Below are positions 3,698 through 64,000 of a DNA stretch of 64,000 bases, piece after piece. The stretch is taken from the NCBI GenBank assembly GCA_048013815.1, contig CM106586.1:8804001-8868000 (forward strand), in the 5' to 3' direction. The stretch's first letter is position 1, and every line of letters begins with the position of its first letter. Below the pieces are notes generated by a model. That model had not been told where the DNA came from. It made no database searches and was given only the letters and a program-made list of their open reading frames with translations. The translations under genes were made by a program, and so were the position numbers. The stretch comes from Setoptus koraiensis. Taxonomy: Eukaryota; Animalia; Arthropoda.

Positions 3698-4394
3698 TTC
3701 AAATGGAATGAAGCTCACTGTTGTTGCTGTGAGACTACAATTGTTACAAGCAACTACACATATCACAGTTGTTTTAAAAGATTCAACTATTGAGTAAGAA
3801 TAAAATTATCTTCCTCAGGCTCTAAAAATAACGGTGATTATAATAACAGTTAGTTGCAATTGTAATCAAGGGGGTGTAAAGACGAGACAAATGAAATATT
3901 TTTCGTACGAGTTGAGAGCGCTCCACTCACAACCATATGACGACTTTCACATGCGCATTCATGAGGCTGCTCAAAACAGCTGATGCGAATAAAAAACTCT
4001 CATTCGAATTTTTTATAGACTTCGCCACTTTTGTATCATGGATTTATTTATGGCATAGAAATATTGCAGATTCTCAAGTTCACAGACTCAACTGGTACGT
4101 TGTCAGGTAATTGTTGAACTGAGGATATCGCGACTAAAAACAATTACTAGATTTGCCACTAGGACAATCACCTCCTTGAAAGATTCAGACCGAGTGTAGC
4201 CAAATGAGAATAGCGAGAATGCAACCAGCCACGTATCATAGTTTATCTATTAATTAATTTCTCAGATAAAGGAGAATTACATTCTTTATGATGACGCTTA
4301 CAGCTATGTTGCTAAATTTGGACATGTATACAGAACTACGTTGGAATATGTGAGAATTTCGCCTTTCCTATAATACACCTATGTCTCATGGCTC

Positions 4395-6227
4395 TTAGAG
4401 TTTTCGTCGATTTTCCTTTTGGTTCCTTAATGAGACATATGCACGAGAGGGGGAGTCTCCATATGGATCCGAGCCATCATCGAAATGCATTGGACAATTT
4501 TCGGCTTCGCGTTCATATTCTGTCAACTTGAGAGCGACTTGAGCCCCCTCTTGAGCTTTTGAGCTTTCCTCGTTTTGGAGAATATGACAGAACGCACCAA
4601 CCGACATTGACATCAATATCTGGTTCTGGTCGCTTCTTTGATAGACCCAACATCTGTACCTACTATATGCGTCATGAGGGTCGTATGTAATCAAGTAGGA
4701 CTTGAGATTCTCTTTCCAATATCCAACGCATTGCATCTGGTAGTCTGGCTCGGCATAAATATCGACAGGTCTTCCATTATGATCAACTGACAGACAATAG
4801 TTTGGGTCGATGGAAATAATTTTTTGATCGCCACACGAAGATAAGTCCGAGATTCTTTGCCTACAATAGACATTTGGTTTCGGTGATTGAGTGACACCAC
4901 CAATTGTTCTGTTCTCGAATAGAATGTCACCTTGTTGTATGAACCTGAATTTACCTGCAACTGGACACTGCAGTGGCACTGGGTTCTTCGCAACCATTAG
5001 ATCATACATCCAATTTTCTTGATTATCAAACATACTCCATGAACAAACAGTTGCAAAATTGTCAGTGATGACAGCTTGTCCTCTTCGATACCTTAATATA
5101 TTATGATGCCTTCTTACAAATTGGAAACAAACATAATCTCTTTGGCAACCATTAACACCAAGTCTCGCCATTACGTAACGTGAACCTCTATTCTCTAGGC
5201 AAACATATGTTTCTTGCTTGATACGACCAGTGTCTGGCTTCCATCGTTCGACCATGCCTGTGCTATCAATGGTAACTTCCGCATCAAAGTTTGCTGTGTT
5301 AATCCAGATTCCTGTCATATTCTGAGGTAATGTACATTTAGGTAATACTGTATCATCTTTTATAGCAGATATCCTCCAACGCTCTGGACCTTCCTGGGGC
5401 GATCTCAAAACATTACATTCGGCTGTGTTGGATACAGACAAGTAAGAGTCATCATCTCTATTTGTTAAGAAACAGCGGTAAGCCTCTTCCGATCGTGTTT
5501 CACGAGTATTTTTCACAGCAAAATAATGATTTTTTCCAATATACCAATCTCCTAGGCACTTGTATTCGATGAGGGCATCTTGAGTCTCGCGCATACCTGG
5601 ACATGAGCGATATTCGACAAGAAATTGTTGATTGATGTTGAAAAATTGTGATCCCGGTTTTTGGCAGGCAGTGATTCTCGACTCGACATTTGAGCATTCT
5701 CCAGTAAATTTATATTGATTCTGATAGGCAAATCTCCAACGTCCCTCTAGACTAGAGCGACAATTTTTTCCAATGGGATTCTTCGAGAACAATGTTATAG
5801 ATTCTTGATTAGAGTCAAGAGATTGACACACTGATGAAATAGATGGTGGCCTTTGTTGGTAAGATCCACCAAACGACGTGACGCACTGAGTTTCAATCTT
5901 ATCTAATACATTCAACGTTCTTATAAGTAGACGGATACAATAATGACAATTATTGTTACCGTTGAATAGAACCAGAGTAAAGTTGTCATTGTTATTATTA
6001 GTGAAAGCTACCAATCTTCCCCTATCTGAGATGGTGTTGCTGTCTATGACAGTAAATTGATTATGGCCCTTCTCTCTTGAAAACCATTCTCCTCTGAGTG
6101 TGTGGGGAATCTCTGGCTCTTGAAAGATATTCCAATTGCTAAATTGAGCACTGATGATTTGAATGAACTGGCCAGACAGTAGGGTGAGCGCCAATAGAGT
6201 GAATGTACAATTACTAACTATTGCCAT
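4395..6227 (-). CDS. Conserved-looking uncharacterised secreted Cys-rich protein with an internal two-fold repeat, 610 aa
   Basis: Hydrophobic N-terminal signal peptide, about 20 Cys, paired repeats CLGDWYIGKNHYFAV..YRCFL and CVGYWKENLKSYLIT..YRCWV. The extreme C-terminus may be spliced. Confidence 0.75.
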   Translation of the reverse strand: MAIVSNCTFTLLALTLLSGQFIQIISAQFSNWNIFQEPEIPHTLRGEWFSREKGHNQFTVIDSNTISDRGRLVAFTNNNNDNFTLVLFNGNNNCHYCIRLLIRTLNVLDKIETQCVTSFGGSYQQRPPSISSVCQSLDSNQESITLFSKNPIGKNCRSSLEGRWRFAYQNQYKFTGECSNVESRITACQKPGSQFFNINQQFLVEYRSCPGMRETQDALIEYKCLGDWYIGKNHYFAVKNTRETRSEEAYRCFLTNRDDDSYLSVSNTAECNVLRSPQEGPERWRISAIKDDTVLPKCTLPQNMTGIWINTANFDAEVTIDSTGMVERWKPDTGRIKQETYVCLENRGSRYVMARLGVNGCQRDYVCFQFVRRHHNILRYRRGQAVITDNFATVCSWSMFDNQENWMYDLMVAKNPVPLQCPVAGKFRFIQQGDILFENRTIGGVTQSPKPNVYCRQRISDLSSCGDQKIISIDPNYCLSVDHNGRPVDIYAEPDYQMQCVGYWKENLKSYLITYDPHDAYSRYRCWVYQRSDQNQILMSMSVGAFCHILQNEESSKAQEGAQVALKLTEYEREAENCPMHFDDGSDPYGDSPSRAYVSLRNQKENRRKL

Positions 6228-6617: not shown

Positions 6618-8036
6618 ATGGACGAATCAAATCCGGGCGAGGCCAGCAATCCTGGCCAAGCTCCCATTCCAGTGACAATCCCAGCGACAGTTGCAACGAC
6701 CGTTCCATCAGGCAAATTGTTTTCGTGTGGCAATCATTTTGTCGAGACCACCAAAGGAATGTTACATTTCGGAGAGCCCAGCGAAATGGTTTGTATGTTG
6801 GGAGTTCCTTCGACAATGAACGTACGTGATATACTACAATTCCTTAGTCCGTGTAGCCAAGATTTAGAGAACACAAGAATAGTACGGGAAGTCAATCATG
6901 ACACTTGCTACATAGTATTATTGAAATTCCGCACACAAGCCAGTGCCGATGAATTCTATTCTAATTTCAACGAAGCCCCCTACAACTCCATAGAATCTAA
7001 TGCCTGTCATCTAATGTATGTTACAAGAATAGAGACATTCTCGGAGGACCCCATACATAGAGAGCAGCCGAATTGTGCCGTGTGCCTTGAACGTATGGTA
7101 CCAGAAGTTGAGAGTATCCTCACCATCTTATGCAATCATTCATTCCACACTCATTGTCTCGGAAAATGGGGAGACACCTCTTGTCCGGTTTGTAGATATT
7201 GTCAGACTCCTGAATGTCAAGTAGAGAATCGTTGCATGGAATGTGGCTACCAGCAAGAATCACTTTGGATGTGTATAATCTGCGGACATGTTGGTTGTGG
7301 CCGTTATATCGACGGGCACGCCTACGACCACTTTAGAGAGACTCAGCACACCTATGCCATGCAATTAGCTGACAATCAAGTTTGGGATTATGTCGGTGAC
7401 AACTATGTACATCGTCTATTAGCAAACAAATCAGATGGTAAGCCAGTAGAGATAGAAGGCTCAGACGCCCATCGGCTAGCAGAAGAGAAGATAGAGGCCG
7501 CACAGTTAGAATATACCTACTTATTGACTCAGCAGCTCGATTCACAACGCAAATACTACGAGAAGCAATTGAGAGAGTGTGAAAAAAACAATCAAAAAAA
7601 GATAAAAGATCTGACTGTTAAAAACAAAAAACTTAGCGACGATCTGGCTGATCTAGAAGAGAAGTGTCAAACACTGAATAAAGACAAATCTAATCTAGAA
7701 AAAAAACTCCATACCACATCTACTAAATTGGCCAAAATTCAAAGCGAACTCACGGATGAGCGACAAATGAACAAGTGCTTGGGCTTGAATCAGGAACAAT
7801 TTCAAACAAAATTGAGAGAAACGGAAAATGAAGTTAGCACCAAACAGAAAATCATAGTGGACCTCGAGGAACAACTTAGGGATCTCATGTTCTTCGTTGA
7901 AGCTCGTGATAAACTAAAAGAATCTGTAAAAGATAATGTTGTGTCGCAGCAGGAAGTTGAAGATAGTCAATTAGTAGTTAATGAGGCCGCGTCCACTTCC
8001 AAACGGAACAAAAATAAGACAAAAAGAAAACAATAA
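6618..8036 (+). CDS. BRAP: BRCA1-associated protein BRAP2/IMP (RING E3 ligase with UBP zinc finger and coiled coil), intronless
   Basis: BRAP2 domain (YIVLLKFRTQASADEFYSNFNEAPYNSIE), RING CAVCLERM..LCNHSFHTHCL..W..SCPVCR, zf-UBP LWMCIICGHVGCGRY..HAYDHF, C-terminal EEQLRDLMFF. Confidence 0.95.
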   Translation: MDESNPGEASNPGQAPIPVTIPATVATTVPSGKLFSCGNHFVETTKGMLHFGEPSEMVCMLGVPSTMNVRDILQFLSPCSQDLENTRIVREVNHDTCYIVLLKFRTQASADEFYSNFNEAPYNSIESNACHLMYVTRIETFSEDPIHREQPNCAVCLERMVPEVESILTILCNHSFHTHCLGKWGDTSCPVCRYCQTPECQVENRCMECGYQQESLWMCIICGHVGCGRYIDGHAYDHFRETQHTYAMQLADNQVWDYVGDNYVHRLLANKSDGKPVEIEGSDAHRLAEEKIEAAQLEYTYLLTQQLDSQRKYYEKQLRECEKNNQKKIKDLTVKNKKLSDDLADLEEKCQTLNKDKSNLEKKLHTTSTKLAKIQSELTDERQMNKCLGLNQEQFQTKLRETENEVSTKQKIIVDLEEQLRDLMFFVEARDKLKESVKDNVVSQQEVEDSQLVVNEAASTSKRNKNKTKRKQ

Positions 8037-8119
8037 ACAATAATAAATGATTTAATAAATATATTAGCCCCCTATGCTGGCATATATATTTCTTTATTGC
8101 GCTTAGTCTAAAATTGACA

Positions 8120-9920
8120 TCAACTTATTAAGCAATTGGATGAATTGTCTACGTCTATCTTTTTGTATTGGAATAATATTTCTGTTGTTCCCTTTAATGG
8201 CAGATCTACTTTTGTTTCGTTGGCTACGAGAATGGCTGCACCGTAGGAAGATGATTTCTTCAATCTTAGTAATGTGAAGTTATCTAGATGCTTAGACAAG
8301 GTATCAATGAAGCCTTCTCGTAGCAGGTTCCAACTATCAAAAACTGCCCCAACGCACACAATACGAATGCCTCCCTCCTCTTTCATGAGTGCCTGAGAAT
8401 ATGGATAAGTTTTGAGTTGAGTTGATATGGAATTTCATTTTCAGAATGTACCAACCGAATGAGAATCAATTTGATTAGAGACTTACAGAGTCGACATTTG
8501 GTAACAATGCAATTATATGTTGGGCCAGTTCGCTTCCTGATTCTGAAAAAATCTTATTGATGACGGGATCGCTCTCTTCGCAAGTGGCTTGAATATGTGG
8601 AATATTCAAAGTTATGTATGATATACCGAGTGAAAATGTGCATTATTCATCATTAATTTCTTAATCGTTAAGAATTTTGATCTAATCATTGATCAGAACC
8701 TAATTGAAAGATATATACAAATAATTACCTATGTAAAGTTCTTTGCTCAAACTAGCAATCTTCTTTTTATCGAAGCCCTTGCCTTGATTAGATCTATAAA
8801 AATACTCTATTAGCAACGATCGGATATCATCCTGGGAATCATCCTCATGTATGTTGAAATGTCTCCTGATAACCTGTTCTAAACGACTAGTTTTCAATCC
8901 ATTACCTTTAAAATTGTCTTTGACATTGAGTACAGCCTTGCAAGCTTGGAGAGCAATCCAGTAAGCGGATCCCTCATCACCGAGCAAATAGCCGTAACCA
9001 CCACAAGTATATTGAGATTCCTGATTTGTGATTAAGTGAATTACGTAAGTCATAAGTGAATATTCCTTTGTACCAGCTAGAGATAAATAACGTGAAAAAC
9101 TATAATTCAACTTACATCTGGATTGAGAAGCAAACAATTGGACCCGGTTCCGGCAATAAGTACAAATCCTCCTAAGATCAATGAAACAGGGCCAAATATG
9201 AGTCAATACTAACCAATTCAAGTTACGAATGCCTCAGCATTAAATTAAATGTAATTATTACCTTTAATACAGGCAGTTAACAATGATCCAACGAGATCGT
9301 TTGCAGCTACGCATGATGTCGTCATATCCGGATAACTTTCTAAGAATGAATTGCTAACTCTCTTACATCCAGATCCATGACAACCACTCAAACATAGGCC
9401 CTACACAGATTGATAAAGTTGATTAATGAAATATTCAAAATTCTCTCGCTAGGAATGTAAGTCAGAAGCTTAGGTTGTGCGCTACACTGTGGCACTAATC
9501 AGAAGTTATACTAACGAGGCCATTCAGAGGCTCATCAAGAGACAGTCCAGCGTGAGACTTTGCTTTCTTTATCATTGAATTTATCCTATGATTACACTCA
9601 TTTAGATCGCCAATCAGCTATGAATAAAGAGTTTAAAAAAGCTGTCAAATTTCATGAATCAAGATTTTCAGGATGATGTTCCACGTACCAATCTAAGGGA
9701 AATACTCACAAGATAATTTGTTGGTGGTCCTATAGTTTCCGAAAGTGTTTCACCTTCTTCATTCAATAAAACTAACTTTGAAGAGGAAGCTCCTCTGGAT
9801 TGAGATTGTGTTGAAGAGATAGTGCAATAGAATATGAGTGAAATGAATCTCTACATTTAGCACACTAGTGTGTAGCAATGTATGATTGACTTACCCTTCA
9901 ATTCCTGCGAAAATTTTCAT
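8120..9920 (-). CDS. NAGK: N-acetyl-D-glucosamine kinase, 8 exons
   Basis: Exons 9920-9895, 9794-9710, 9617-9516, 9400-9262, 9171-9116, 9020-8729, 8587-8487, 8392-8120, all GT-AG with consistent phases. The spliced protein has MKIFAGIEGGAS, LIAGTGSNC, CGGYGYLLGDEGSAYWIA, VCVGAVFDSW and SYGAAIL. Confidence 0.92.
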
Positions 9921-9925
9921 TGCGT

Positions 9926-10280
9926 CTAAGTGGCAAAAGCTTTGAAAAACAGTGCTGCAACTTTGTTAGTTGGGATTTTTAGATCCCCAGCGATAATGAT
10001 GGAAAATAAGTGATTTCTTGCGGGAGAAAATGTTGTATCACAAAGAGGACGTGTTGAGTAGTGCCATAAATCCGAACAAGTTACTGTATGTCTAACAAGT
10101 GATATAACGTAATTTGTTATATATATCGTATGAAGAATAATAATAAGTCCAACAAGAATCGCACATGTAATGAAAATCATTTGTGTAATTTGTGCGAAAT
10201 TTATGCAATGAATGAAAAAGCAAAAAAGTAAGAAGGATATTGTTGCCAGACAACAACCATCCAACGGGGATTCGTCCTAT
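9926..10280 (-). CDS. Possible small two-TM membrane ORF or orphan exon directly upstream of NAGK
   Basis: Open frame of about 115 codons with two hydrophobic stretches (CLATISFLLFCFFIHCINF; MIFITCAILVGLIIILHTIYI). No ATG in good context and no recognisable family. Confidence 0.25.
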
Positions 10281-11453
10281 CTATCTGTCTATCTACAATA
10301 TCTGGGATTGGCGCGCTATGGCAATCAGTCATGTGATTACTTAATTGTTTCTTTCGGTTTGTTCTAGATGTTAGTGTACAGGTGATTGATGTTAATGAGT
10401 TCGACCCTCGTTATGATATGTAGATATATATTTACATAAAGTGATTGCGGAGCGAGAACTCATTCAAGAAGAGATTACAAACGAAAAAAGTTAGACAAAG
10501 GCAAGGCGTTGGCTTAGAACAAGTGTAGCTCCCTCTATCACTCTCACTTTTGAGCGATCTTTATCTAGCTTGTTTGTCCCTTCTTCACTGTCTGATGATA
10601 CATGTGCTCATCTGACAGCAATTGGTATCTAAGATAAATTGCAAATAAGGTAAAATCTCATTGTAGTATATCGATGCATGGTGCTTGGTTAGTTGAGATA
10701 TTCTTGTTGTCTAGGCATGGTTTGGATTCATTTGGCAGGATAGTTGGATATCGATGTATGATTAATAATGGAATAGCTTTAATGGTGATGATTATGGTGG
10801 TGGCAAATTGAAGGCAATGAAAACATTTTTCTTTCTAAATGATCTAGCTGAATGCATCTCGACTTGGTAAATGCATGATGTACAGATGTTGCTGATCCGC
10901 TAAGCTAGCTATATCTTGATATATTCATTGTTTACGCCCAGTGGTCTCGTTAGGCTGATGGGTATGAGTCTGTTTAAGGGAATGTTTGTATTTGATCATA
11001 GTTGTTCAACTAACAATATTCAAATACGACTCGTTAAACAGGACTGATTATGAAGTGAAAGAACCACATGTATATCTGGTCCTTTCAGAGATGAGTTGAG
11101 AGAAGGAAAAAAACAATAACAATTGAAAGTAACACATGATTCTGCTGTCTGCTCGAATGCTCAAACTTGTTTTGTTGACTGAAACAGCGCCAAATTTGAC
11201 TGCTTGCACTTCGAAAAAAACCTCCCAAGTTTTTTCCAATTCTTCGGAAAGATGAGTTGGATGACCAATCGATCTTGTATTAGGTTAACTTATTTGATTC
11301 GAAATCAGAACAACATAAAGAAGAAAGAATTCACAAAAAGCATGATTTTTTTCCTTGCGTTAATTTATTTCAGGCGAGCTTCTATAACAAATTGAGTGCT
11401 GTGTTGTTGTCGAACATATAAATTGACAAGCAAGGAAACAATGTAGATGTTCA

Positions 11454-13805
11454 TCAAAATCGGTCAGGATTTTTCTTACATAGTGGAGCGTGTTGTTCGA
11501 GCAATGAAAACTGTAGAAAACCATGAAAGCAGAATGGACACTGGAAAGGGTCGGCAGCTTTGGCCTTCGTTGGATAATTTAGCTGTATCGGACTATCACT
11601 TTTGGCTGTTAATTGCAAAGTAGTTTGCTCCAACTTGCATATCTTTTGGGACGATTGAGTATTGTCACCAATTGATGGCTTCTTGTTTATCGGAGATTTA
11701 TTTATAGCTTTCTTTTTGGACTTAGTTGAAGGTGATTGACTCGAAAATATATCAGTGGGCAACTTTCGCTGAGTTGGAGAATTCTTTACCCTTGATTCTG
11801 AGGGAACTTTTTTGGTTGCTGGACTCTTAGTGAACGTCATCTCCAACAAACTTGTATTGCACTTTTTTGTACAAATATCAACATGACGTTCGAGATCGAA
11901 AAATTCAGCAAACGATTTGAAACAATATGGACACGGAAAGGCTTCTCCTGCAGCTTGCTGCTCTTCTTGCGATAGTTTGTTTAATTCTTGAGATCTAGAT
12001 TGGTCGGAATTACTTTGGCTTGTTTCAATTATGTCAACATCACCATTATCTGATTCGTTATTTTCTACACCGACACCATTGGTGCTGGCTATTTCTTCAT
12101 CACATTCGTTAGTTATATCAATACAGTCCTCCTCAACAGCACTTTGCTCCATTGGTGTACCATCGGCCTGATTCAATTCAAGGTTTTCGTCTTGAGGAGT
12201 TTCCTTAATTTGATCTTCATTATTACTGCCTGTCGGCAGTTCTTGATTTCTCAGGAGAGCATCGATGGTCATTTGAGTTTGCTTTGATGAATCATCAGCC
12301 AGGTTGGACAATCTGACTCCCATAAGTCTGAAGCCCACATCAGGCGGAGAATTTGCTATTTCGGTGAGAAGTAGATTTTTTGTGGCAGTAAAAATGACAG
12401 ATTTGTCATTTGTTGCGAAAAGCATTGTGTAACTTCTAACAAAAGTAGAGAAAGTAGTACGTTTGAGTTTCAGGGTTACAGTTCGTCCTCTTATTCGATG
12501 AGGCTTTAGATATTTTGTGCACAACTCTTCGCATATTCCATCTAGTCTATCAACGAGGGTCACTTGGTCTCTGGTTGGGGTGGAAAACGTTCTTTCAACC
12601 GACTTTGATTTTCGTTGCTCATCTGACTTTATTAAAGTAGATCCGTCTCCCAAGGCAACCCTTAAATAAAACTTAACATTAATAGGATAGAAGACTACGG
12701 GCAATAGATGACGTTTTTCATAAAGGTCACCACATGTCTTGATATCTAGAGCATGTAGAAACTGTGCAGATACTTTTCCTATTCCAGATATTTTCTCTAC
12801 TGGTGTATTATGTATGAAATCAGTGATGTCTTGCTTATAACCTTTTAATAGAAATTGCCCGTCTGGTTTGTTGATATCGGTGCATATTTTCGATAACAAT
12901 GTATTACATGCAATTCCAGCCGAACAGCGAAGCTTTGTCTTGTCAAACACTTTCTGTCTTAGTTCCTGAACAACTGTGTCAGCTCTCTCCCACCAGACTA
13001 GTGGTAAAGTGCCATCGTAATATTCTTGGTGCTCCATGTTATCATTTTGCAATGTTGACTTGACATAGTCCGTAAGATCCAAGTATGCCTCATCGAGACT
13101 CATAGAAGCTAGATCAGGATCATAGGTTTCTAAAACTTCAAAAACCTGATTGGAGGCAGCTCGATATTTGGACCCATTAGGTGATATGAGGATTAATTCT
13201 GGACAAAGCTTCTTGGCAATGAATCCCGGCATCGCAGCCCTTACTCCGAAGCGTCTAGCTACATAGTTTGAGGTGGCTATCATAGAATTACTACCCACTG
13301 CAACTGGTTTTTCTGCCAATTCAGGATTATCAAGAATCTCCACAGCGGCAAAGAACATGTCCAAGTCTATATGGGCAATAATTCTGTTGTAGACGCGTTG
13401 CTTATCCAACTCTTCTACCATAGCATCACAAGTAGTTTTTGCATTAGATAATTGGCTTGGAGTTGCCGATAATACCTTGTTCAACATCCTCTCGATGCTC
13501 TTATGGATTTCCTCTTGACGCTCGGCTTGCCTCTTGAAGAACAGGCTACCTTTTGAGGCTTGCTCTATTATGTCATTGATGCGATTCTTGTCTATACCCT
13601 GCATTCCAGCTTTTTCGCCAACATGCATAATCTCTGGAACTACTGTATTGATTTTGGTAGTCTCTTTTACAGCCGGTTGTGGCGGTGCTGGAGCCGGTTG
13701 TGGCGGAGCCGGAGGTGGCTCTGGAGGTGGATTCGGCCGACTTAAGTCGGGAATGTCATCAAATTGAGAATCCATGAAGGAATCAAAGTCCTCTACGCCG
13801 TCCAT
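11454..13805 (-). CDS. POLK: Y-family DNA polymerase kappa, intronless, 783 aa
   Basis: N-clasp region GMQGIDKNRINDIIEQASKGSLFF, HIDLDMFFAAVE, TSNYVARRFGVRAAMPGFIAKKLCP, SLDEAYLD, two C-terminal UBZ fingers (CPYC..H..C and CPFC..H..C). Confidence 0.96.
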   Translation of the reverse strand: MDGVEDFDSFMDSQFDDIPDLSRPNPPPEPPPAPPQPAPAPPQPAVKETTKINTVVPEIMHVGEKAGMQGIDKNRINDIIEQASKGSLFFKRQAERQEEIHKSIERMLNKVLSATPSQLSNAKTTCDAMVEELDKQRVYNRIIAHIDLDMFFAAVEILDNPELAEKPVAVGSNSMIATSNYVARRFGVRAAMPGFIAKKLCPELILISPNGSKYRAASNQVFEVLETYDPDLASMSLDEAYLDLTDYVKSTLQNDNMEHQEYYDGTLPLVWWERADTVVQELRQKVFDKTKLRCSAGIACNTLLSKICTDINKPDGQFLLKGYKQDITDFIHNTPVEKISGIGKVSAQFLHALDIKTCGDLYEKRHLLPVVFYPINVKFYLRVALGDGSTLIKSDEQRKSKSVERTFSTPTRDQVTLVDRLDGICEELCTKYLKPHRIRGRTVTLKLKRTTFSTFVRSYTMLFATNDKSVIFTATKNLLLTEIANSPPDVGFRLMGVRLSNLADDSSKQTQMTIDALLRNQELPTGSNNEDQIKETPQDENLELNQADGTPMEQSAVEEDCIDITNECDEEIASTNGVGVENNESDNGDVDIIETSQSNSDQSRSQELNKLSQEEQQAAGEAFPCPYCFKSFAEFFDLERHVDICTKKCNTSLLEMTFTKSPATKKVPSESRVKNSPTQRKLPTDIFSSQSPSTKSKKKAINKSPINKKPSIGDNTQSSQKICKLEQTTLQLTAKSDSPIQLNYPTKAKAADPFQCPFCFHGFLQFSLLEQHAPLCKKNPDRF

Positions 13806-14209
13806 TTCACACTAAATCCCCTGGTTATGTTGGGATTAAAAGTAATAATAGCTATGATAGAAATAAATTCTGGAGTGAAGTCGGACGAATTTAGTTACAT
13901 GTCGGATAGATATTGTGTCAACTCTAAACAAGTGATGATGACAGTGAAGATAGTTGTGCGGTTGTAATCCACTTGTAAACAACACAACTTCACCATGTGC
14001 TACACACGCTTTGAAAATGTCCGCTGTGATTCGGCATTGCGTTATTAGTGGTTACAGTGAGTTACGCCTGGAGGCGCTTCTCGCCACATTCGAAAATGCA
14101 TTCATTTGTTATTTATGTCCAACCAAATAACAAATTGCGAATTGACCGGTATTCTTCAATCGAGATAAAAGCATCTCGATTTGATTTATTATTATCATAA
14201 TTATACAAA

Positions 14210-14734
14210 ATGGCAATTTATATCAGTAGACTGCCGTTATCACTGTACAGGAATATTTTCAGGACGCCAACACAATTAGCTATTAGGTTCATTACGGTAA
14301 CCACCAAGGACTGTGCTCGGCGTATTGTAGTCGAAGAGAATGGAGAGGAGACCATCATAAAGGGTGTAAATGTTGTATCACCTAGACAGGGCTTCGTAGT
14401 CAACACACCAGAGACAACAATACATAAAACTGCATGCCCCTTGTGCAGGTTAAATCTTAGAGGTCTCAATCATACTGACACGCTCATACTAAATCAATTC
14501 GTGCTTCCGAATGGAGAGGTTATGGGGTTAAAAGATACAAAATTATGCTACAAACAGTATAAACTGGTTAAGAAGTTAATATCCCAGGCTCAGAGATGCA
14601 ACATCATGAAACGACCAAGTAATTACCTGATACCTGGACCTTGGCACGATATGAATACCTATATTGAGAGAGACAGAAGAAGAGACCGACCAATGAAAGT
14701 TGTTAAACCAGAATACTGGAAATATGCTGATTAA
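14210..14734 (+). CDS. MRPS18A: Mitochondrial ribosomal protein S18A (mL66)
   Basis: Mitochondrial presequence-like N-terminus; CPLCRLNLRGLNHTDTLILNQF, LC.KQ, and the arthropod-type tail PGPWHDMNTY. Confidence 0.85.
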   Translation: MAIYISRLPLSLYRNIFRTPTQLAIRFITVTTKDCARRIVVEENGEETIIKGVNVVSPRQGFVVNTPETTIHKTACPLCRLNLRGLNHTDTLILNQFVLPNGEVMGLKDTKLCYKQYKLVKKLISQAQRCNIMKRPSNYLIPGPWHDMNTYIERDRRRDRPMKVVKPEYWKYAD

Positions 14735-15066
14735 ATAATTTCCAGAAAGATAAAATAGCCTCAATAAATTCGTTCTATCAATTGATCGATTGATTCTTTT
14801 CTCAATGAATGATATTACCTAGCACATTTGCATGACGTGCCCACTTGTCATGCGCGCGCTTCCTTTAGAAGAAGTACAATAGTATTTTCTTTGGTCATTC
14901 TACTATTATACTTATATTGAACCTTCGCAAAAATAGCTATCATAACAATGATAACATATATATATATATTTGCAAAATGGAGCAACAGCAACAATCTTGC
15001 AATCAACTATAGAAGGACCTTCAGCCTTTTTGTCCTTTGATTTTAAAATATAAAAATTGAGACAGG

Positions 15067-18000
15067 ATGTTTCTCACATTAGTCAGTTTAGCATCAGTTA
15101 TAACCACTTTGCTTGTGAGCATAGTTGTTATACGAGCTCAAGAGCTGTTCATTAATAGCACAGTTAATAATTTATTAGAACAAACGGAAATCTCATCAAT
15201 TGGCAATGATAGAGAAGAAGACAATCGACAAACGTTACACATAGCCGCGCTATTTCCTATGAGCGGAACTGGAGGATGGATAGGAGGTTATGGTTGTCTA
15301 CCTGCAGTTCTCATGGCTTTGGACGATGTCAATGCAAACAAGGATTTATTACCTGGCTACAAACTCAAATTGACTCATAATGATAGTCAATGCAACCCAG
15401 GTAAAGCCGCAAGATATATGTATGACATGATCTATCGGCCTCCCAAGAAAATCATATTGGTTTGCGGCTGTTCCACAGTATGCTCTATTGTTGCCGAGAG
15501 CGCGAACATGTGGAATCTTATTGTTGTGGGATATGGATCATCATCTCCAGCACTTAGTGATAGAAGCAGATTTCCTACATTCTTCCGCACTCACCCTTCA
15601 GCTACAATACACAATCCAACTCGCATAAAACTCTTTGAAAAGTTTGGCTGGTCCAGAGTGGCAATCATATTAGAAACAGAAGAGGTGTTCATTGAGACGG
15701 CAAGAGATTTAGAGCAACGATGTCGAGCCAGGAATATTCAATTATTGACGCGCGTATCATTTGTTCGGCAACCATCTGACGCTATGGACAATCTTAAAAG
15801 AGCCGATCCTAGGATCATAATTGGCATGTTTTACAAGCACGCTGCTCGCAGAGTAATGTGCGAGGCCTACAAAAGAGGACTCTACGGAGAAAAGTATGTC
15901 TGGTTTCTTATCGGTTGGTACGAAGATGATTGGTGGACAGATGTGACAGATCTTGAATGTAACTACGATCAAATGAAAGCAGTCGTTGAGGGTCATCTAA
16001 CCACCGAGGCGTTAGTTTTGAATCAGGACAACAAAAAGACAGTGTCGGGAATGACTTCGAAAGATTGGCTCAAACGCTACCAAAAGGAACTATCAAGAAA
16101 TCCAGCTCCACTGAACAAAGTTGTCTCTGCCTCTCAGAAGAATCCATTAGAAAAATTGAATACTGTCACAGTTCAAGCTCGACCTGAGGGTTATCAAGAG
16201 GCTCCATTAGCCTACGATGCAATATGGGCTATAGCACTTGCATTAAATCGCACGATATCAGATCTGGATAAGCTCAAATTGACTATCGATCAATTCAATT
16301 ATACCCACACACCACATATCAAGAATGTGTTCCTTGACAATCTCAGGAAGACCAATTTCTTAGGTATTTCAGGAGAGGTCGCTTTCTCAGATATAGGTGA
16401 TCGTATAGCTTGGACTCAGATAGAACAACTGACTGACGGCAATTACACTGTGATAGGATACTACGATACAAGAACAAACAACCTTTCATTAGAAGACTCT
16501 AAAATAGTATGGCCAAGAGGAGAACATCCGCGAGATAGAACAATAATCATGGAATTGATTCAATACTTATCGCTGCCCTACATGGTAAGCTTTTGTTTGA
16601 TTAGTATCGTTGGAATACTCGGATCTATCGGATTAATATATTTCAATTGGTCAAGAAGGAATGATGGGTGAGTATATTGAACCATCTCAACTCTCGAATA
16701 GCTTGCAAAGTTTCTTCTTCTGTTTTTCTAATGACAAAATTTCTTCCACTTCCTACAAATTTCTGTTTAGTTTGATTAAAATGTCACACCCCTTAACTAA
16801 CAATCTAATGCTATTAGGTTGTATTGTTTGCCTGCTGAGTGCAATCCTATTTGGTTTGGATGGTCGCTTCATAACACCCAGCTACTATTATCTCTTGTGT
16901 GACTCTAGAGCTTGGTGTCTGAGCATTGGTTTCTCATTATTCTTTGGGTCTATGTTCTGGAAAGTTTGGCAATCTTATGTTCTATCTACGAGAAATTCGA
17001 CAATGCGTTGCACAAATAAGCAAGTGTTTATTATGGTAGGGTCATTTTGCTTAATAGATTTTATAATTTTAACCACATGGAAGATCTATGAACCAATGGA
17101 TCGTATAACGGAAAAGGTTAAAGAACAGTCCGGTTTAGAGCTGAACATGGGCGACGATGTCATTGTAAGTAAGAATTTATATTCAACCAAGTGTCAACTT
17201 ATTAGATATCCCAATCTCATTATATCTTATCAACCATTGTAATTGATAACCCCTACCTGCCAGGTGGAGCTTAAGATCGAATACTGTCGAGCCAATCTAT
17301 ATTGGTATTACATTTTATTTTGTTATAAAGGACTATTATTGGTCTTTGGCCTATTTCTGTCCTATGAAACAAGAAGCGTAAAACTGCGTCAATTGAACGA
17401 TTCAAAGTTGGTTGGGATGTGCATATACAATGTTGCAATAATGTGCTTTATTACCGGACCTGTATCTTTGGTGAATTTGATGCGACAGCAAGTAAATTAT
17501 CATTATGCGTTTGTTGCTTCGACGATTATTTTTTGCTGCTACCTGTCTATGACACTTATATTTATACCGAAACTATTGGAATATTTGAGGCGCCAACGCA
17601 ATAAATCTGGCACTAGCGTCAATAACATTGTTGCAGATAACAGATCCAGTCGTGACGATGAAGAACAATATCAGCGTTTGGATAGAGAAAATCGCGATTT
17701 GGCAGACAAGATAAAAGAGAAAGATTTTCAAATTCAAACTGTCATCAGACGCATCGATGCGGCTCAAGAGCAAGCTAATTTAGCCGAGCGAACGGCTCTA
17801 AGGGAACGACGCGTCATAAAACGAGTTGTTAGAATATCGGAGCCCCAGGGTGAAGAGCAAGACCATCCCGAATCCGAAAAATATCAACGCAATAACTCAT
17901 CAGCGAATCGAACAGCAAACCACCATTCCTTGGACAATGGTGGTGGCTTGACAACACAGTTAAAAGATGGAAATGGTACAACAAATTGTAAAGGTAGCAA

Positions 18001-57347: not shown

Positions 57348-59269
57348 AAACAAACAGTTTCGTGTTTTGCGCAGCACAACACAGGCTCAACACAACAGTT
57401 GATTGGTTGATCGAAACACCGACACGGCACCACTACCGGCTATCTAAGGAACGCGTTATCTAGCTGTTGTGAGCTCTCCTCTCTCTCTCCCTTGTCAGCA
57501 TAGTTAGCTATGCGGACTTCTTCAACTTTTCTCTGGCTAGATGAATGTGCGCAGCACTCATCAACATACACCATACACTCTTTGGTAAAGTATAGGAAAG
57601 AACGGGCGATTGTGGGAGTGGAAAGAGGAAAACAAATCCACTTGTGCTCTAGTTTAGTTGTTGCTGTTACTCGAAAAACCTATCTATCCATCTGTGTTAT
57701 AACTTGGATCCCAACTATTCCGGCTCATCTGTAAAGTCGACAATATGCTAAGGAATGTCGAGGTTGTCTGGCGTAGCATGTCGGAATGTTTTTAACACTT
57801 TCTGTACTCACACTACACAACAACTATTTGGCTTCCCAACTTGGTTATGTGCGTGCATTTGATTAGCCCTAATTGAAATAGACAATTCATCTTTCAGGTC
57901 GTCTTCCTGCATTCCATTGAATTTGCGCTGACATACCGGGTCTTGATATTTTTATCTTATGTGCAAGATGTGAGCGACAAAAGCGAATACAAAACTTTCG
58001 CCTCGCCTACTGTTGTACAGTGTATGTATTCGTATTCATTCATATTCGTTCATTCATATATTAGTACCAAAACTTGAAAACTTAACTGTAATTGTCCATA
58101 TTGTTACAAATACATTAAATGAATGAGCTACGTACGTATCTAAGTAATCCATAATATTATCGCGCTGTTGATGACGTGAAAAGTTTACTGACTCTGAGTT
58201 TAGTCGCAACAGTAGAACAAAAAAACCCATTCGTTTGCATTTGTTAGCGTTAAGATACCGATCGATGTTTATATTTATAGTGTCTAACTGTACTCAACTG
58301 TTCGGTAATCTGGAGGTTGTTGGAACTTAAGTGTGCTGCATTTTGCGACTGTAGGAAGGCTGCCATTGGCATGTGTATTGTCTTCTTTGTGGTTGTTAAT
58401 TCGCCAGTCATCATGGGTGAAAGCTTACGTTATTTCTCTATCATTCAAGGAATTGTTGGTACGGAAGTCGTTGGTGGCGTAAAGTTTCGTTACGATATTC
58501 TAATATCATAAATGTTTTTTTGATCGTTAGAGAAATATGGGGTGAAGGGGTTTAAATAATGTATGGGTTCTATTGGGGCGGTAAATAGGGGTGGGGTAGC
58601 TGTGGAGTAAGCTGAGGTGGGAAGGGTTGCGTATATTTGAAAATGGTTTGCGTTTCGGTGTGTGTGGGGTGTTTGGTCGTGGACGGTGGTTAATGTCAGC
58701 GCTTCGTATGAAGGTGGGGTTGTGGGTGGAAGAGGGGCGTAGGGTGGGGGTCGGGCTGTGTGGGATGGGTACCTCAAGGGATGGAACATTGCTGATTGGT
58801 CTTAGTGGGTGGTTTGCTTAGTGTGGAGGGTGCTGACTATATGTGGTTTTCTGTTTAGTGGACCGACGGCATCGGTGTTTTGTGGTGTTTAACGAGATAG
58901 AGTGGGTGCAGTGTTGTTCAACAGATGGTTATGGGGTTTACTAGTGGGGGGGAGGGGGGGGATGTGGGAGCGCGTTTTTTGGCAAATTCTGACGTACCTG
59001 TTTTTGTGTGGTTTAATTTGTCGGATTTCTAGTTACTTTTTTATTGAGGGCGATTCCCTTAAATTCATAATTGATAGAGGAATAGCGCTACCGGGATCAA
59101 TTTGTGGGAGCAAACTGCGTTTAATTTTGATTGTTGGTGGGTTTTCTAGTTACAGCATCTGCCCAGCCAAAAGCAAGCCGGCTCTCACCCGCACAAAACT
59201 AATTGTTTCTTTTTTTTTTTTTCAATGAGGATTATTGGGGGAGTACGAGAAAAGAGGATAAGAGTGAAG

Positions 59270-59990
59270 GAATGCATTTTCGATAGATATAACGTTTGAT
59301 GCCCGCCACCCAGCCTAGCCACCTAATATCGTCCTATCCTGCAGGAGATGCTACAGGGGCAAGGTTTTTGATTGAGCTTATCATGGGGATTGCTAGAGAG
59401 GAACTGGCTTAGGCAAATTGACTTAGAAACTGGTCTTAATCTCAGTATCTCTATTGTGTATATGCATTTGCTTATACGCCATTGAAGCAAAAATCTCTAT
59501 TTGCTGTCTTTGTTAGGCGCAATTACCTGGCGCTTTACCACCCCTTATTGGCTATTATTTGCTGCATATTGGTGGGCAATCTGAAAATTAGGGTTATGTG
59601 CCTGTAGATTATTTAATTGCTATTATTTATTCTCAATTCAATTTGTTTGGCCAATTCCTTATTTCTTGAGTTATATTGCTTGGGTATTAGACGTGTTACA
59701 AAAAGCAGGATTTAGGTTATTACCAAACAAAGTCAAAAGAGGGATAAAGTAAGTGCCGGATTTACTCTTGTAAGTAACTAACTACTAATACCAGTAAGTA
59801 TTTGCCAACTTTTTTACATTTTGGTGGGTATTACATTGCTGGAGTTTCAAATCATAGCGGGTTTGGCATTTAGTTTATTATGCCTATCAGCTAATGGTAA
59901 AGATGGATTTGCCAGTGGCAAGGAAAGTGATGTTTTGTTCTTTTTTTTACATCCCATTAGTGCATGTAGTTTTATTATATTTGATTTTAA
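59270..59990 (+). pseudogene. cyoE: Frameshifted bacterial heme O synthase (protoheme IX farnesyltransferase), 5'-truncated
   Basis: YAFAYTPLKQK (59461), PGALPPLIGY (59526), AGFRLLP (59705), ARKVMFCSF near the end; many 1-nt indels. Confidence 0.85.
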
Positions 59991-60008
59991 TCTTGAAAGA
60001 ATTTATAA

Positions 60009-60616
60009 ATGGTGCCATACATCTGCCACAACTAAGATTTAAATTTTAATGCCAACCCAAAAAGTTTGTCGTTTGGCTATTTGATTGTTTCATCAACCAT
60101 TATGTTTTGGCGGAATGGACAAGTTATTTACATCGTCTTTTCGGCCCTCAAAAGGTAAGGGACATGTGCTTTAGTATTGCAGATGTTTTTACCTATCGCA
60201 CAGCCCCGTTATTATGGCAAGTTGTGTTATGCTTTTACTGAGCCTATAGGGCTATAAGAAACGGAGATAAAACTAAGCAGCAACTATTTTTATGGAGTTG
60301 TGTAACAATGATTTTTTGGGATTGGCTTTTGGCTTTTTACAATTTCAAGGCCTGGACTAGCTTTATACAATAGTGCTGCAGTTTAATTAACAACAACGCT
60401 GCTATTTCAAGATTTAAAATGTATCTGGTTTTCACTTGATACCAATTTTTGCAGGAATTTTGCTTTTATTTTTTAAAATGCATTAGTTGGTTCTTAGACA
60501 ACAGATTTCTGTAGAAGAAATGCCACTTATCGCCAAGTTATTACTGCTATTTTTTGGCCATTTTATAGATATATTATGGATATATCTGTATGTTTTTTTA
60601 CTTTTGAACAGTTTAG
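60009..60616 (+). pseudogene. ctaE: Frameshifted Bacteroidota cytochrome c oxidase subunit III family gene, first copy
   Basis: (N)PKKFVVWLF..SSTIMF(G)GWTSY, AIRNGDKTKQQLFLW, HFIDILWIYLYVFLLLNS (60559). Confidence 0.85.
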
Positions 60617-60653
60617 ATTTTTTTAACAAACTATTTTTATATACTATTACTAA

Positions 60654-61375
60654 ATGGATATCATTTATCTGATATTTAGACCAAGCCTTAAAACTACCCC
60701 ATGGGCCGGTGGCCGTTCACCCATGGTCAGTTGCATATGGTAAAATAATGATATGTGGTTTTTTCTTACTATCGGATGCCTTCACATTCTCGTTCATTAT
60801 TGGATATATTATGGTTGCAAGTTTCTCGAATTCACTTGGCATTCCCAGATTTGTTTCCATTCATACAGGTGTAACCGATACTGGTTGCTCCACTTGTATT
60901 TGTGGGTATATGACCTTATTTTAATAGGAGTTCTGTGAACTATGGTGTTTAGGCGGGTAGAAGCCTGGACATGAAGAGCAAAAAAAGAAGGTTTTGGTGG
61001 ATGGTTGTACTTTTATTGGTGGTCTTTTATGTTCTTAGCTGGCTGTCAAGCCATTGAGTGGATCACATTTTCATCACGAAGGTTTTTGGTGTGGGAACAA
61101 TTCAAGTGCTAAAGAACTAACACATTTCTTCAAATGGTCCTGTTTCATACAGTAGCAGCACAACTATTTGCAATTCTTTTCTTTACAAATTACTGGTTTC
61201 CCCGTTTCGACGTATTTAGTGTGTAGTTATCATATATTCATCATTTTATGTATGACAATTAATGGAACTTTTGAGAAACGCGTGGTCATTATTATGGTAG
61301 AAATAAGTTGTTTATACTGCACTTTGTAGATTTAGTTTGGGTGTTGTATTTACATTCTCTATATTTAGTTTTATT
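60654..61375 (+). pseudogene. ctaE: Frameshifted Bacteroidota cytochrome c oxidase subunit III, second copy
   Basis: TTPWAGGRS(P)WSVAYGKIM(M)WFFLLSDAFTFS and terminal HFVDLVWV (61320). Confidence 0.85.
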
Positions 61376-61397
61376 ATCATTCTTTAATAAAATTATT

Positions 61398-61773
61398 ATG
61401 TCAGACATATCGTAAATTACAACAGAAGATCACGGCCATGACGATATGCAGGAATGTCAAAAGTTTGAATTTGGAAAGTTTTCTTTATTCTATTGTTTAT
61501 TACTGTATCGAATTCATCATCGCAGTATGGATTAAGCCTGCAGGTTTTATTTGTGTAACCATGCAATTTATCGGAATACACTTTACATTGTTATAACCTT
61601 ATTAAAGGCTTTTTACATTGTTGCTATTTTATGCACTTAAAATTCGAGAAGAAAACTTGGATTGCAATTATCATTGTCAGTTTCGTTCATATTTATTATT
61701 TTATTTCATTGTTTTGATGCTATGAAGCGGTGGTTATATTCATGACCATTATGCCTCAAGTGCTATAAACTAA
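61398..61773 (+). pseudogene. ctaF: Frameshifted cytochrome c oxidase subunit IV family gene
   Basis: His/Asp-rich start TTEDHGHDD, IWKVFFIL, LLKAFYIVA, FMHLKFEK; stop overlaps the next start (TAATG at 61771-61775). Confidence 0.8.
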
Positions 61774-62495
61774 TGAAAAACAAACCAAATTAAAAAGATA
61801 TTAATCATGGTAACCATTTTAGCGGTACCGGGATTTTTATATTATTTGCTTCAGGACAAAAAAGGTGGGAATAATTGATATAACCACTCGCTATTTATGG
61901 CGAAAAAGAATAAGGTGGCCAATACTTGCCACAGTGTAAGTGGGAAAAAAAATACCAGAAACGAATTATACCATTAAAAATATCAGACTTTAATTGAATA
62001 ATCAAAAGTCTAGATACGTATCTTGGCAAACTATAAAGACAGATGTTATTTTTGCTAAATCTTTTTTATTCAAATGGCAAAAACTACGGAGTCGTTTTTA
62101 CAAATAAAGCGTGAGTGGTTCAGTAGGTTGTAGAAAGAATAACTGATGCACTTTATAAGTTTAAGCATCGATCCTGCTCAAGATTAATGCGGTAACGATA
62201 GTGATTATGCAAAAAAATTAGATGCTTAAACCTTCAAAAAGGGATTTGTTTGCTGGTGATAGCACTTGGTAATGGGGCTCATTAAAATGGGTTGTTATTA
62301 GTTGCCTTAAATTCAATGAAAATGGGGAGACCTTTTTTTACTTATAATAACATGTTGGTGGATTTAATTTGATACACAACATAAAAAAAGAGGCTATACT
62401 GGCAATTCCTAACCACAGAAGCACTCTCTAACTAGACGATGAAATTAAGTGTTATATCGAAGAGTTGAGAAACATGAGGGTGGTAGATGGTGGAA
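61773..62495 (+). pseudogene. Frameshifted SCO/SenC-family gene
   Basis: KKILIMVTILAVPGFLYYLLQD, YKPLAIYGEK, SIDPAQD, terminal DEIK..EELRNM; position follows the Bacteroidota cox operon order. Confidence 0.7.
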
Positions 62496-62560
62496 GGTTG
62501 AACGGTGAAGGTGAAGGTTGAGGTTTGAAAGAAATTTATCTAAGTAAGTTATAATAAATC

Positions 62561-63123
62561 ATGCAGAAGACAGTTAGAACAAACAATAAAATAAGTGATA
62601 TAATCATATTATCAATCGCCATTCCTGTGGTGTTGGTTAGCTCTTTTTTTTGGTGTTAATTAAATGAAAATTGGGCTATGTGGTCAACCTCTTTCCTTTT
62701 TGCCTCAATTTATGCTACTATAAATGGTGTAACTGCGTTGTTCTAATTATTGCGGTTTTTTATGGCAAATCAAAAACGGGAAAAAAGAAAACTTCATGAA
62801 AATTTAATGAAAGGTTGCTATCTTACTTTCTGTTCTATTCTTAGCATGTATGTCGCCTTATACATGACGTCCGATTCTACAAAATTTGGAGGTGAAGGCG
62901 CAATCACATAATCTATTATTTTATTTTTGATTTTACGCACATCTGCTATCAGTAATTATCATTCCATTCGTTGTGGTAACGTATTGTGAGGGCATTAGGG
63001 GCCCCAAATAAGAACGGGTTTTGACCAAACTAAGAAGATTGCTAAATAAACATTTCCAATGTGGTTATATGTGCGGTTAAGGTTTGTAATCGTTTACTTA
63101 ATGATATCTCCTTTTTATATTAA
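62561..63123 (+). pseudogene. Frameshifted DUF420 membrane protein gene
   Basis: IIILSIAIPVV, IYATINGVTAL, LHENLMK, MTSDSTKFGGEG (62864), FPMWLYV, VYLMISPFY. Confidence 0.85.
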
Positions 63124-63199
63124 CGATTAGATTTTTTGTCGTTTTTGTAAAAACCATTTTATTAGTTTATGCTAGTTATCTATATATTAGGGTTAAATA

Positions 63200-63762
63200 A
63201 ATTTGACGGCACGTGTGGATATTAAAACAGGTAAAGATTTATTTGAACTATTATTGGTAGCCCATGTCAGCTTTTTACGGAATTTCTATAACCAATTTTT
63301 TCAAAGTTGATACTTGCAGCAGACATGCAGTGTTAGGCTATACCCACAGTTTGTTGAGGTGATTGTCAAGATGTGTTATTTTAAAGATTTGGGAAAAGCC
63401 CTGAAAATTTAGAAAAAATACTTTCCCTTAAGTCCTACTTATACCGTTCTGTTATCACATGCCTCTATTAACTATTGTAAATAGACAGAAAAGCATAGTA
63501 TGAGGCATCATAAAAAAATAGCCTTAGATTTTACTGAGAATATTTAATTGAGTTGTGGAAGAGAATGCAATTGATCATACTATTACATCTGAAATTGAAA
63601 AATTGCCTTTGCACAGTGCAAAAAAATATTTAAATTAAATCGTCTCTGGAACATTTAAGTCTTAAAAGATTGTTCAATTTTAGGGATATCTGAAAGAACA
63701 GTAGAAATCATATTGCAAATGCGCTCTAAAAATACTCAGAAAGGCCTTTTAGTAATAAAGTT
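63200..63762 (+). pseudogene. Frameshifted Bacteroidota ECF sigma-70 factor gene
   Basis: DVFLKIWEK, LKSYLYRSVI (63427), ASINY, EIEKLP..CKKIFKLNR, GISERTVE(N)HIANAL (63683). Confidence 0.85.
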
Positions 63763-64000
63763 GTAAAGAAACCTTCTTCGGTGTTATAAATTTGTTCTCT
63801 CTTTATATCTTTTTTAATATTTTTTTAAACAAACTAGGTTTTTTGTGTTTCCGTATTGATCTTAGATTACATAAACAAACCACAATGCTCCAAACCCCTG
63901 AATCCCTGGTATTCCTTACTAGGTATTTGAATGATCCTGTGATTTGGATTGTAAACAACTTGTTGACAAATTACGATCTGAGGTTCTTGCTAATGAAAAA

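Follow-up and report, generated by a model that had tools for sequence, protein, structure and literature searches.

The window, by which is meant the whole 64,000-nt stretch of DNA that was analysed, ends in a series of bacterial genes on the + strand, in the order cyoE, COX3, COX3, COX4, SCO, DUF420, ECF sigma, FecR and SusC, the last of which lies beyond the window (Table 1). The first seven of these had been put forward in the same order and orientation in the original prediction, and they are recovered in a colinear blastn alignment to Pedobacter polaris, by blastx to ORFs on the related contigs L007, L008 and L033, from which the synteny is read, and in Pfam matches to COX4_pro and DUF420. 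The possible FecR start that had been suggested near 63,890 is found as an ATG at 63,885.

Table 1. Features of the bacterial stretch and of its left-hand join, numbered from the first letter of the window. In the following piece, L002, the features beyond the window occupy 1–867 (FecR), 901–4578 (SusC) and 4585–5084 (N gap).
Feature	Position	Strand	Evidence
G/T-rich strand-asymmetric stretch between mite DNA and Pedobacter homology, ~450 nt	58,535–58,982	.	composition
cyoE (protoheme IX farnesyltransferase, UbiA family), without ~first 25 codons	58,983–59,997	+	blastn, alignment, gene map
COX3-family gene 1	60,009–60,616	+	blastx to relatives' ORFs, P. polaris ORF/Pfam, gene map; 28 gap events
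COX3-family gene 2	60,654–61,373	+	blastx to relatives' ORFs, P. polaris ORF/Pfam, gene map; 47 gap events
Prokaryotic cytochrome c oxidase subunit IV gene (COX4)	61,398–61,765	+	Pfam, gene map
SCO1/SenC copper chaperone gene, ATG 61,773	61,773–62,497	+	blastx to L007 and L008 ORFs, gene map
DUF420 membrane protein gene	62,561–63,125	+	Pfam, relatives, gene map
ECF-type sigma-70 factor gene	63,191–63,817	+	blastx to L007 ORF 6281–6883, gene map
FecR anti-sigma gene start	63,885–64,000, on to ~64,867 beyond window	+	blastx, blastn, gene map
SusC-type TonB-dependent receptor, cut at 500-N gap	~64,901–68,578 (beyond window)	+	blastn, P. polaris ORFs, gene map

Identity of the genes

The reading frames are shredded, as had been described: stretches without a stop reach 99 codons at most on the coding strand, there are 11–169 gap events per gene and no ORF is intact. 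When 30 stop-free pieces were compared with Pfam and NCBIfam, matches were obtained only to COX4_pro and DUF420, such that COX3, UbiA, SCO and the sigma factor are seen through the relatives' ORFs only. The COX4_pro match, of the piece 61,559–61,714, lies above the cut-off (E 1.6e-7, 32 bits), and the same region matches NCBIfam caa3_sub_IV at E 0.019; the DUF420 match, of the piece 62,747–62,908, lies below the cut-off (E 6.3e-5), and this piece has 52–59 % identity to 29 relatives. In P. polaris, the corresponding ORFs are assigned as UbiA for cyoE (E 1.4e-41) and SCO1-SenC for SCO (E 1.6e-13), the ECF sigma ORF carries Sigma70_r2 and r4_2, and the counterparts of the two COX3 genes have 192 and 235 codons, respectively. 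A six-frame search of the genome with the COX3 profile gave no match because the frames are too shredded; with a COX3 piece, a first scan of a collection of genome contigs yielded no confirmed relative and a PDB sequence search only chance zinc-finger matches. With regard to the stop–start overlap TAATG that had been claimed for the coxIV/SCO junction, the motif does exist at 61,771–61,775, but homology suggests that COX4 probably terminates slightly earlier, with the TAA at 61,766–61,768, and a true overlap is therefore unsupported.

Extent of the bacterial stretch

Homology to Pedobacter spans 58,983–68,578, some ~9.6 kb which are colinear with P. polaris and run past the window end. The greater part, 59,325–68,578, is aligned by blastn in a single colinear block with P. 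polaris L101 6661–15,655 (9.25 kb, 5773 bits), to which a left extension adds 58,983–59,162 against L101 6452–6604 (blastn, 69 %, E 7e-17), with a score at z 17.8 relative to shuffled controls and with a base-by-base alignment that agrees with homology from 58,983. The left edge had been placed at 59,223; the T-run found there, of 13 Ts at 59,210–59,222, instead sits within cyoE, in a segment (59,150–59,330) swollen by spurious insertions. Nor does the bacterial sequence end at 64,000, the limit given earlier, since it continues through FecR and the SusC-type receptor to 68,578, terminating inside the SusC gene 6 nt short of a 500-N scaffold gap at 68,585–69,084. In other words, bacterial and mite DNA are contiguous on the left side, without Ns, whereas on the right side mite DNA is never rejoined and the contig halts in the SusC gene. 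The remainder of the Pedobacter locus lies nowhere else in the genome, as judged from a search with the 20-kb P. polaris locus in three parts in which the positive control worked, and the similarity of 57,500–58,980 to the ctaA/coxI side of that locus is not above that of shuffles. The GC content is 33.9 % as compared to 39.8 % in the mite flank, in keeping with the AT-richness that had been remarked upon earlier.

All 235 genomes of the genus match the stretch and P. polaris is the best match among them, and the earlier attribution to Pedobacter/Sphingobacteriaceae was therefore right. Judged from these alignments, the source bacterium is not of the same species as P. polaris, none of the 235 genus genomes being closer.

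Indels and substitutions

Against P. polaris, 264 insertion and 151 deletion events occur over 8.5 kb of coding sequence, and almost every one has a length that is not a multiple of three; relatives with intact genes, at equal or greater divergence, have 4–17 indels each. A separate count gave 279 insertions vs 159 deletions, mostly of 1 bp and evenly spread at ~20–33 per 500 nt. Against each of seven references which span a whole stretch of 4.6 kb, 215–226 indels are counted, and against seven further references covering less of it the rate is again one indel per ~20 nt. As this rate is constant across references, the indels belong to the window copy, whose private indels amount to ~415–550, or one per 16–21 nt (~5–6.5 %). 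Insertions exceed deletions by 1.75:1, and the inserted and deleted bases follow base composition. The expectation that the indels would often lie in homopolymers is not borne out, there being no enrichment either of 1-bp insertions beside the same base (55 % vs a 53 % baseline) or of 1-bp deletions out of runs (41 % vs 53 %).

Mismatches to P. polaris are 11.2, 7.4 and 34.3 % at codon positions 1, 2 and 3, respectively, a third-position excess from which it follows that most of the differences arose under selection in working bacterial genes. At sites that are invariant in ten intact relatives, the window copy differs at 5.8, 5.0 and 8.9 % (codon positions 1, 2 and 3), where the intact relatives differ at 0–2 % at position 2 in the same test. 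From this comparison, the ~5 % private mismatches appear to be uniform noise, part of which could be alignment artefact or the true divergence of an unsequenced species. The original prediction had proposed that indels be set against substitutions; when this is done, the private indels (~5–6.5 %) equal or exceed the private mismatches (~5 %), which, with the insertion bias, fits the error of single-pass PacBio CLR reads and not neutral decay.

The junction and its mite flanks

A clean breakpoint is absent from the left-hand join, which consists of ~450 nt without homology followed by insertion-swollen sequence. Over 58,500–59,000 there are 203 G, 160 T, 92 A and 46 C, with a GC skew of +0.5 to +0.63. 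The similarity of the G/T-rich stretch to the P. polaris locus does not exceed that of shuffled controls (z 0.5), and the stretch contains no tandem repeat and has no second copy in the genome. In our view it is probably low-quality read sequence left where the two DNAs meet; it could also be mite DNA. A search of the junction with two adapter patterns, a PacBio hairpin end and an ONT adapter (ungapped, ≤ 3 mismatches), gave no match, a weak search because indel noise would hide adapters, and no inverted repeats lie across the junction, as would be given by a missed adapter or palindromic read-through.

The mite genes on the two sides, alpha-actinin, trypsin and Sec24, have stop-free exon stretches of 574–646 codons, and the bacterial stretch lies upstream of alpha-actinin, at a distance of ~3 kb. 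A search of the genome for bacterial 16S gave three matches, all of them the mite's own 18S/5.8S/28S. At another site, a 'Wolbachia-type pseudogene', an overhang of the same type was considered and rejected, there being no gap nearby and the pieces having 90–209 codons.

Origin of the bacterial stretch

The assembly is probably the one described in PMC11920263 for an eriophyoid mite, Setoptus koraiensis, whose genome has two chromosomes and whose N50, 24.53 Mb, equals the length of the chromosome studied here. That paper reports PacBio CLR sequencing of a pool of ≥ 100,000 wild mites, assembly with Flye 2.6 and a single round of long-read polishing, followed by NextPolish and 3D-DNA, at depths of 496× PacBio and 194× Illumina (reads deposited as SRR32458739–SRR32458741). 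Such an assembly would have been built from CLR reads of unsterilised pooled animals and scaffolded with gaps of fixed size.

With a probability that we put at about 0.93, the bacterial stretch would be a technical artefact, consisting of uncorrected Pedobacter-like read sequence at the end of a mite contig. The original prediction had likewise favoured a long read, left unpolished, from a bacterium of the surface or the gut over a decayed insertion, and the indel profile, the codon positions, the gap, the clean flanks and the CLR data from pooled mites all point in that direction. Contaminating Pedobacter-like DNA, from the surface, the gut or plant debris of the pooled wild mites, would have been picked up by very few PacBio CLR reads, and would have been attached to the mite contig end by a chimeric read or a false assembly-graph link, both the low read depth and the chimeric read being steps that we infer. 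Polishing would have left roughly single-read accuracy because almost no other long or short reads covered the stretch, and Hi-C scaffolding would then have put the mite contig with its overhang beside the next mite contig, with the 500-N spacer between them.

An old, fixed horizontal transfer in the mite nuclear genome, now a neutrally decayed pseudo-operon, would also account for the breakage of nine out of nine genes and for the low GC content of 33.9 %. Neutral pseudogene decay in animals, however, brings several to many substitutions for every indel, and its deletions outnumber its insertions; neither is seen here, where private mismatches do not outnumber private indels and the 1.75:1 ratio is in favour of insertions. 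Moreover, it is mainly at third codon positions that the stretch differs from P. polaris, AT drift is unnecessary given that the P. polaris segment is already at 34.1 % GC, and a fixed insertion, at 496× PacBio and 194× Illumina, would have come out of polishing with as few errors as the mite genes beside it, all of which makes such a transfer highly improbable. A very recent and rare insertion is a different matter, in that ~10 kb of Pedobacter DNA, ~3 kb upstream of alpha-actinin in a few Setoptus koraiensis individuals, would be represented by few long reads and so remain unpolished. The contiguity of bacterial and mite DNA on the left, without Ns, agrees with such an insertion, as does a substitution pattern of genes functional until recently, which a very recent transfer would give likewise. 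We nevertheless hold it to be improbable, since the join is ~450 nt without homology plus insertion-swollen sequence instead of a clean breakpoint, mite DNA is not regained on the right, where the contig stops in the SusC gene, and a chimeric read accounts for the same facts without any biology.

That there might be no bacterial DNA at all, the genes being pattern-matching in AT-rich mite sequence, could be argued from the empty six-frame COX3 profile search and from most stop-free pieces being without a Pfam or NCBIfam match. This reading is already refuted by the 9.25-kb colinear P. polaris alignment (5773 bits), the matches in 235/235 genus genomes and the nine-gene synteny.

If the stretch is such a contaminant overhang, then ~8,862,535–8,872,584 of the 24.53-Mb chromosome should be removed from the assembly in the public database (most likely GCA_048013815.1), and surveys of bacterial gene transfer into eriophyoid mites should leave the stretch out. 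Foreign DNA which is fused to a long host contig escapes contig-level contaminant screens. In this regard, the case offers a read-free test that separates raw-read error from true pseudogene decay, made up of the indel-to-substitution ratio, the excess of insertions, the distribution of differences from intact relatives over codon positions and the private changes at sites invariant in relatives.

Comparison with known systems

The Pedobacter polaris RP-3-22 locus (NZ_SWBR01000001.1; L101 6452–15,655) has the nine genes in the same order and orientation over 9.2 kb, at a GC content of ~34 % in both (34.1 % in the P. polaris segment) and with an identity of 81–85 % over aligned base pairs, the reference differing at 15–19 % of aligned bases. 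Unlike P. polaris, the window copy has its several hundred private indels, uniform private mismatches and no intact ORF, and is without the cyoE start and the last ~25 SusC codons. The order cyoE-COX3-COX3-COX4-SCO-DUF420 is colinear with the cytochrome c oxidase accessory cluster of the Sphingobacteriaceae (Pedobacter), although a working operon would have intact ORFs, and here every one of the nine genes is broken.

True bacterium-to-arthropod insertions, such as those of Wolbachia and the acquired genes of spider mites, are flanked twice by host DNA, have host-level quality and decay mainly by substitution and deletion. The present stretch resembles them in that bacterial DNA is contiguous with arthropod DNA in an assembly, but it has neither a host flank on two sides within one contig, nor host-like quality, nor a decay led by substitutions and deletions. 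The closer likeness is to contig-end and chimeric-read artefacts in PacBio CLR assemblies. The stretch differs from these in that an adapter and palindromic read-through were not found. It shares with them, however, an error profile like that of raw reads, in which indels, most of them of 1 bp, are random and insertion-biased and make up several per cent of positions, with insertions over deletions over mismatches and no preference for homopolymers, together with the position at a scaffold gap, the unalignable join and the clean, well-covered flank.

Gene content and bacterial affinity

The DNA between 58,983 and 68,578, positions past 64,000 running on into the next 10 kb of the same chromosome, is very probably (at roughly 93 %) contaminant DNA hanging over the end of a contig rather than a feature of the mite genome. 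Past ca 59 kb, neither strand holds a long frame in an ORF listing or three-frame reading, and profile searches of the stop-free pieces mostly returned no match, the exceptions being the pieces at 61,559-61,714 (a match to Pfam COX4_pro that passes the cut-off, E 1.6e-7) and 62,747-62,908 (Pfam DUF420, E 6.3e-5). With the DUF420 piece as query, 80 metagenome loci were retrieved, and the alignment built from these led to 80 named Bacteroidota loci. Blastx against the ORFs of the retrieved loci gives full synteny, in the order cyoE, COX3, COX3, COX4, SCO, DUF420, ECF sigma, FecR and SusC-type receptor, with every gene name backed by Pfam on the corresponding ORFs of Pedobacter polaris. In blastn, 59,325-68,578 forms a single colinear alignment with positions 6661-15,655 of the P. 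polaris RP-3-22 locus (L101; 76.9 % identity including gaps, 5773 bits), this species being the best match among all 235 Pedobacter genomes. In other words, the gene list, gene order and family guess of the original prediction, as judged by blastx synteny, blastn and Pfam, were all correct.

The neighbouring parts of the Pedobacter locus, with coxI and ctaA to the left and SusD to the right, were not found anywhere else in the mite genome, in a search which recovered the bacterial stretch itself as positive control. Neither is there any bacterial 16S in the genome, the three matches to the bacterial model being the mite's own rDNA. These rDNA copies (L003-L005, at G000:C2:936,174-955,443 and C1:3,251,400-3,254,831) appear partial: L004 covers 18S model positions 4-1116, and L005, from the other chromosome, positions 613-1116, while in L003 18S is represented by its 3' part, together with 5.8S and the beginning of 28S.

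Edges and surroundings

Since the window takes up positions 8,804,001-8,868,000 of chromosome C2, which is 24,533,333 bases long, the window end is not a contig end. A run of exactly 500 N does occur at 68,585-69,084, followed by an intact animal Sec24 gene, and the alignment to Pedobacter stops inside the SusC gene, 6 nt short of this gap. The left edge had been placed at a T-run at 59,223, which is wrong, as homology begins already at 58,983 in a sensitive alignment (L101 6452, at about codon 26 of cyoE; blastn E 7e-17; score z 17.8 against shuffles). The 13-T run is, in the alignment to the reference, one among many spurious insertions within cyoE, and between 59,150 and 59,330 the window has ca 180 nt versus ca 100 in the reference. 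Taken together, the two edges define a foreign stretch of ca 9.6 kb which forms the contig end.

To the left of the homology, 58,535-58,982 is a G/T-rich, C-poor and strongly strand-asymmetric stretch of ca 450 nt (58,500-59,000 is 41 % G, 32 % T and 9 % C), which lacks homology to the Pedobacter locus, contains neither a tandem repeat nor a repeat unit, and occurs only once in the genome. Read junk and a genuine low-complexity region of the mite are both conceivable origins. Neither an adapter (PacBio hairpin-end and ONT patterns, ungapped, up to 3 mismatches, a search from which indel noise would hide them) nor a palindrome was found at the junction.

Frames stay free of stops for 208-646 codons in the alpha-actinin exons, the trypsin-like gene and the Sec24 gene past the gap, all with strong Pfam matches, versus a longest stop-free piece of 99 codons in the bacterial stretch.

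Mite genes to the left of the bacterial stretch
Feature	Position	Strand	Evidence
Alpha-actinin, large spectrin/EF-hand exon	46,713-48,653	minus	Stop-free stretch and Pfam
Trypsin-like serine protease, two exons	51,000-51,653 and 51,799-52,425	plus	Stop-free stretch and Pfam for 51,799-52,425
Alpha-actinin, CH-domain exon	55,085-55,927	minus	Stop-free stretch and Pfam

The ca 6.4-kb interval between the alpha-actinin exons contains plus-strand genes, the protease among them, which are apparently nested in an alpha-actinin intron. Upstream of the alpha-actinin start, GT/CA microsatellite arms at 56,267-56,310 and 56,966-57,005 form imperfect inverted repeats, after which GC content is unusually high, reaching 58 % at 57,000-57,500, with no convincing ORF. 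Elsewhere on the chromosome, the minus strand of G000:C2:1,435,534-1,437,221 (L178/L179) carries AT-rich pieces that are 94-209 codons long, and any N gap is more than 10 kb away; the place was rejected as a raw-read overhang of the same kind, not being shredded at the 20-codon scale.

Assembly background

What is probably the same Setoptus koraiensis assembly was published as two chromosomes with an N50 of 24.53 Mb, from PacBio CLR sequencing on Sequel II of at least 100,000 wild mites from Pinus koraiensis, sterilisation being unmentioned (PMC11920263). Assembly was by Flye 2.6 with one long-read polish and two NextPolish rounds, followed by 3D-DNA scaffolding, and contaminants were screened with BLAST/MMseqs2 (PMC11920263). 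The published final size is 47 Mb (PMC11920263), versus 48.76 Mb in two sequences here. Pooled wild mites provide a source of bacteria, and CLR reads would account for errors that are insertion-biased and blind to homopolymers. The gap of 500 N, which we take to be the usual 3D-DNA spacer, is compatible with such scaffolding. The join itself may have been produced by one chimeric read or by a false graph link, and a screen of the BLAST/MMseqs2 type would be expected to overlook foreign DNA when it is attached to a long contig of the mite.

Indels, substitutions and alternative origins

Over 8.5 kb of coding sequence, conservative gap costs give 264 insertion and 151 deletion events against P. 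polaris, nearly all of them not multiples of three (cheaper gap costs give 547 events in total), whereas intact relatives of equal or greater divergence show 4-17 events each by the same procedure. Seven references that span a 4.6-kb stretch in full each give 215-226 events over it, with the same rate against seven covering less; the indels are therefore private to the copy in the mite assembly. They are mostly of 1 bp and evenly spread (ca 20-33 per 500 nt), with insertions and deletions at 279:159 and inserted bases mirroring the local base composition. The expectation of an enrichment in homopolymers was not borne out, with 55 % of 1-bp insertions and 41 % of 1-bp deletions in such a context versus a 53 % baseline.

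Mismatches to P. polaris at codon positions 1, 2 and 3 stand at 11.2, 7.4 and 34.3 %, with the position-3 excess present in every gene, such that most differences must have arisen in a bacterium with its genes still under selection. At sites invariant in ten intact relatives, the stretch differs at 5.8, 5.0 and 8.9 %, nearly flat over positions 1 and 2, where the relatives' own difference at position 2 is 0-2 %. This suggests a private layer of ca 5 % uniform mismatches, partly alignment spill-over from indels, on top of ca 5-6.5 % indels.

The private, insertion-biased indels, the N gap and the clean mite genes support the original prediction in its preference for an unpolished bacterial long read at a contig end over horizontal transfer. 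That a real, rare and very recent insertion of bacterial DNA is present is, in this light, improbable, and an old transfer, since decayed, is more improbable still, as neutral decay in animals is expected to give many substitutions per indel and to favour deletions, the opposite of what is seen here. Single-pass PacBio CLR reads, for their part, carry ca 10 % error, mainly as random insertions and deletions. It is this pattern, rather than neutral decay in animals, that the private indels and mismatches, weighed against each other in the comparison with relatives, fit.
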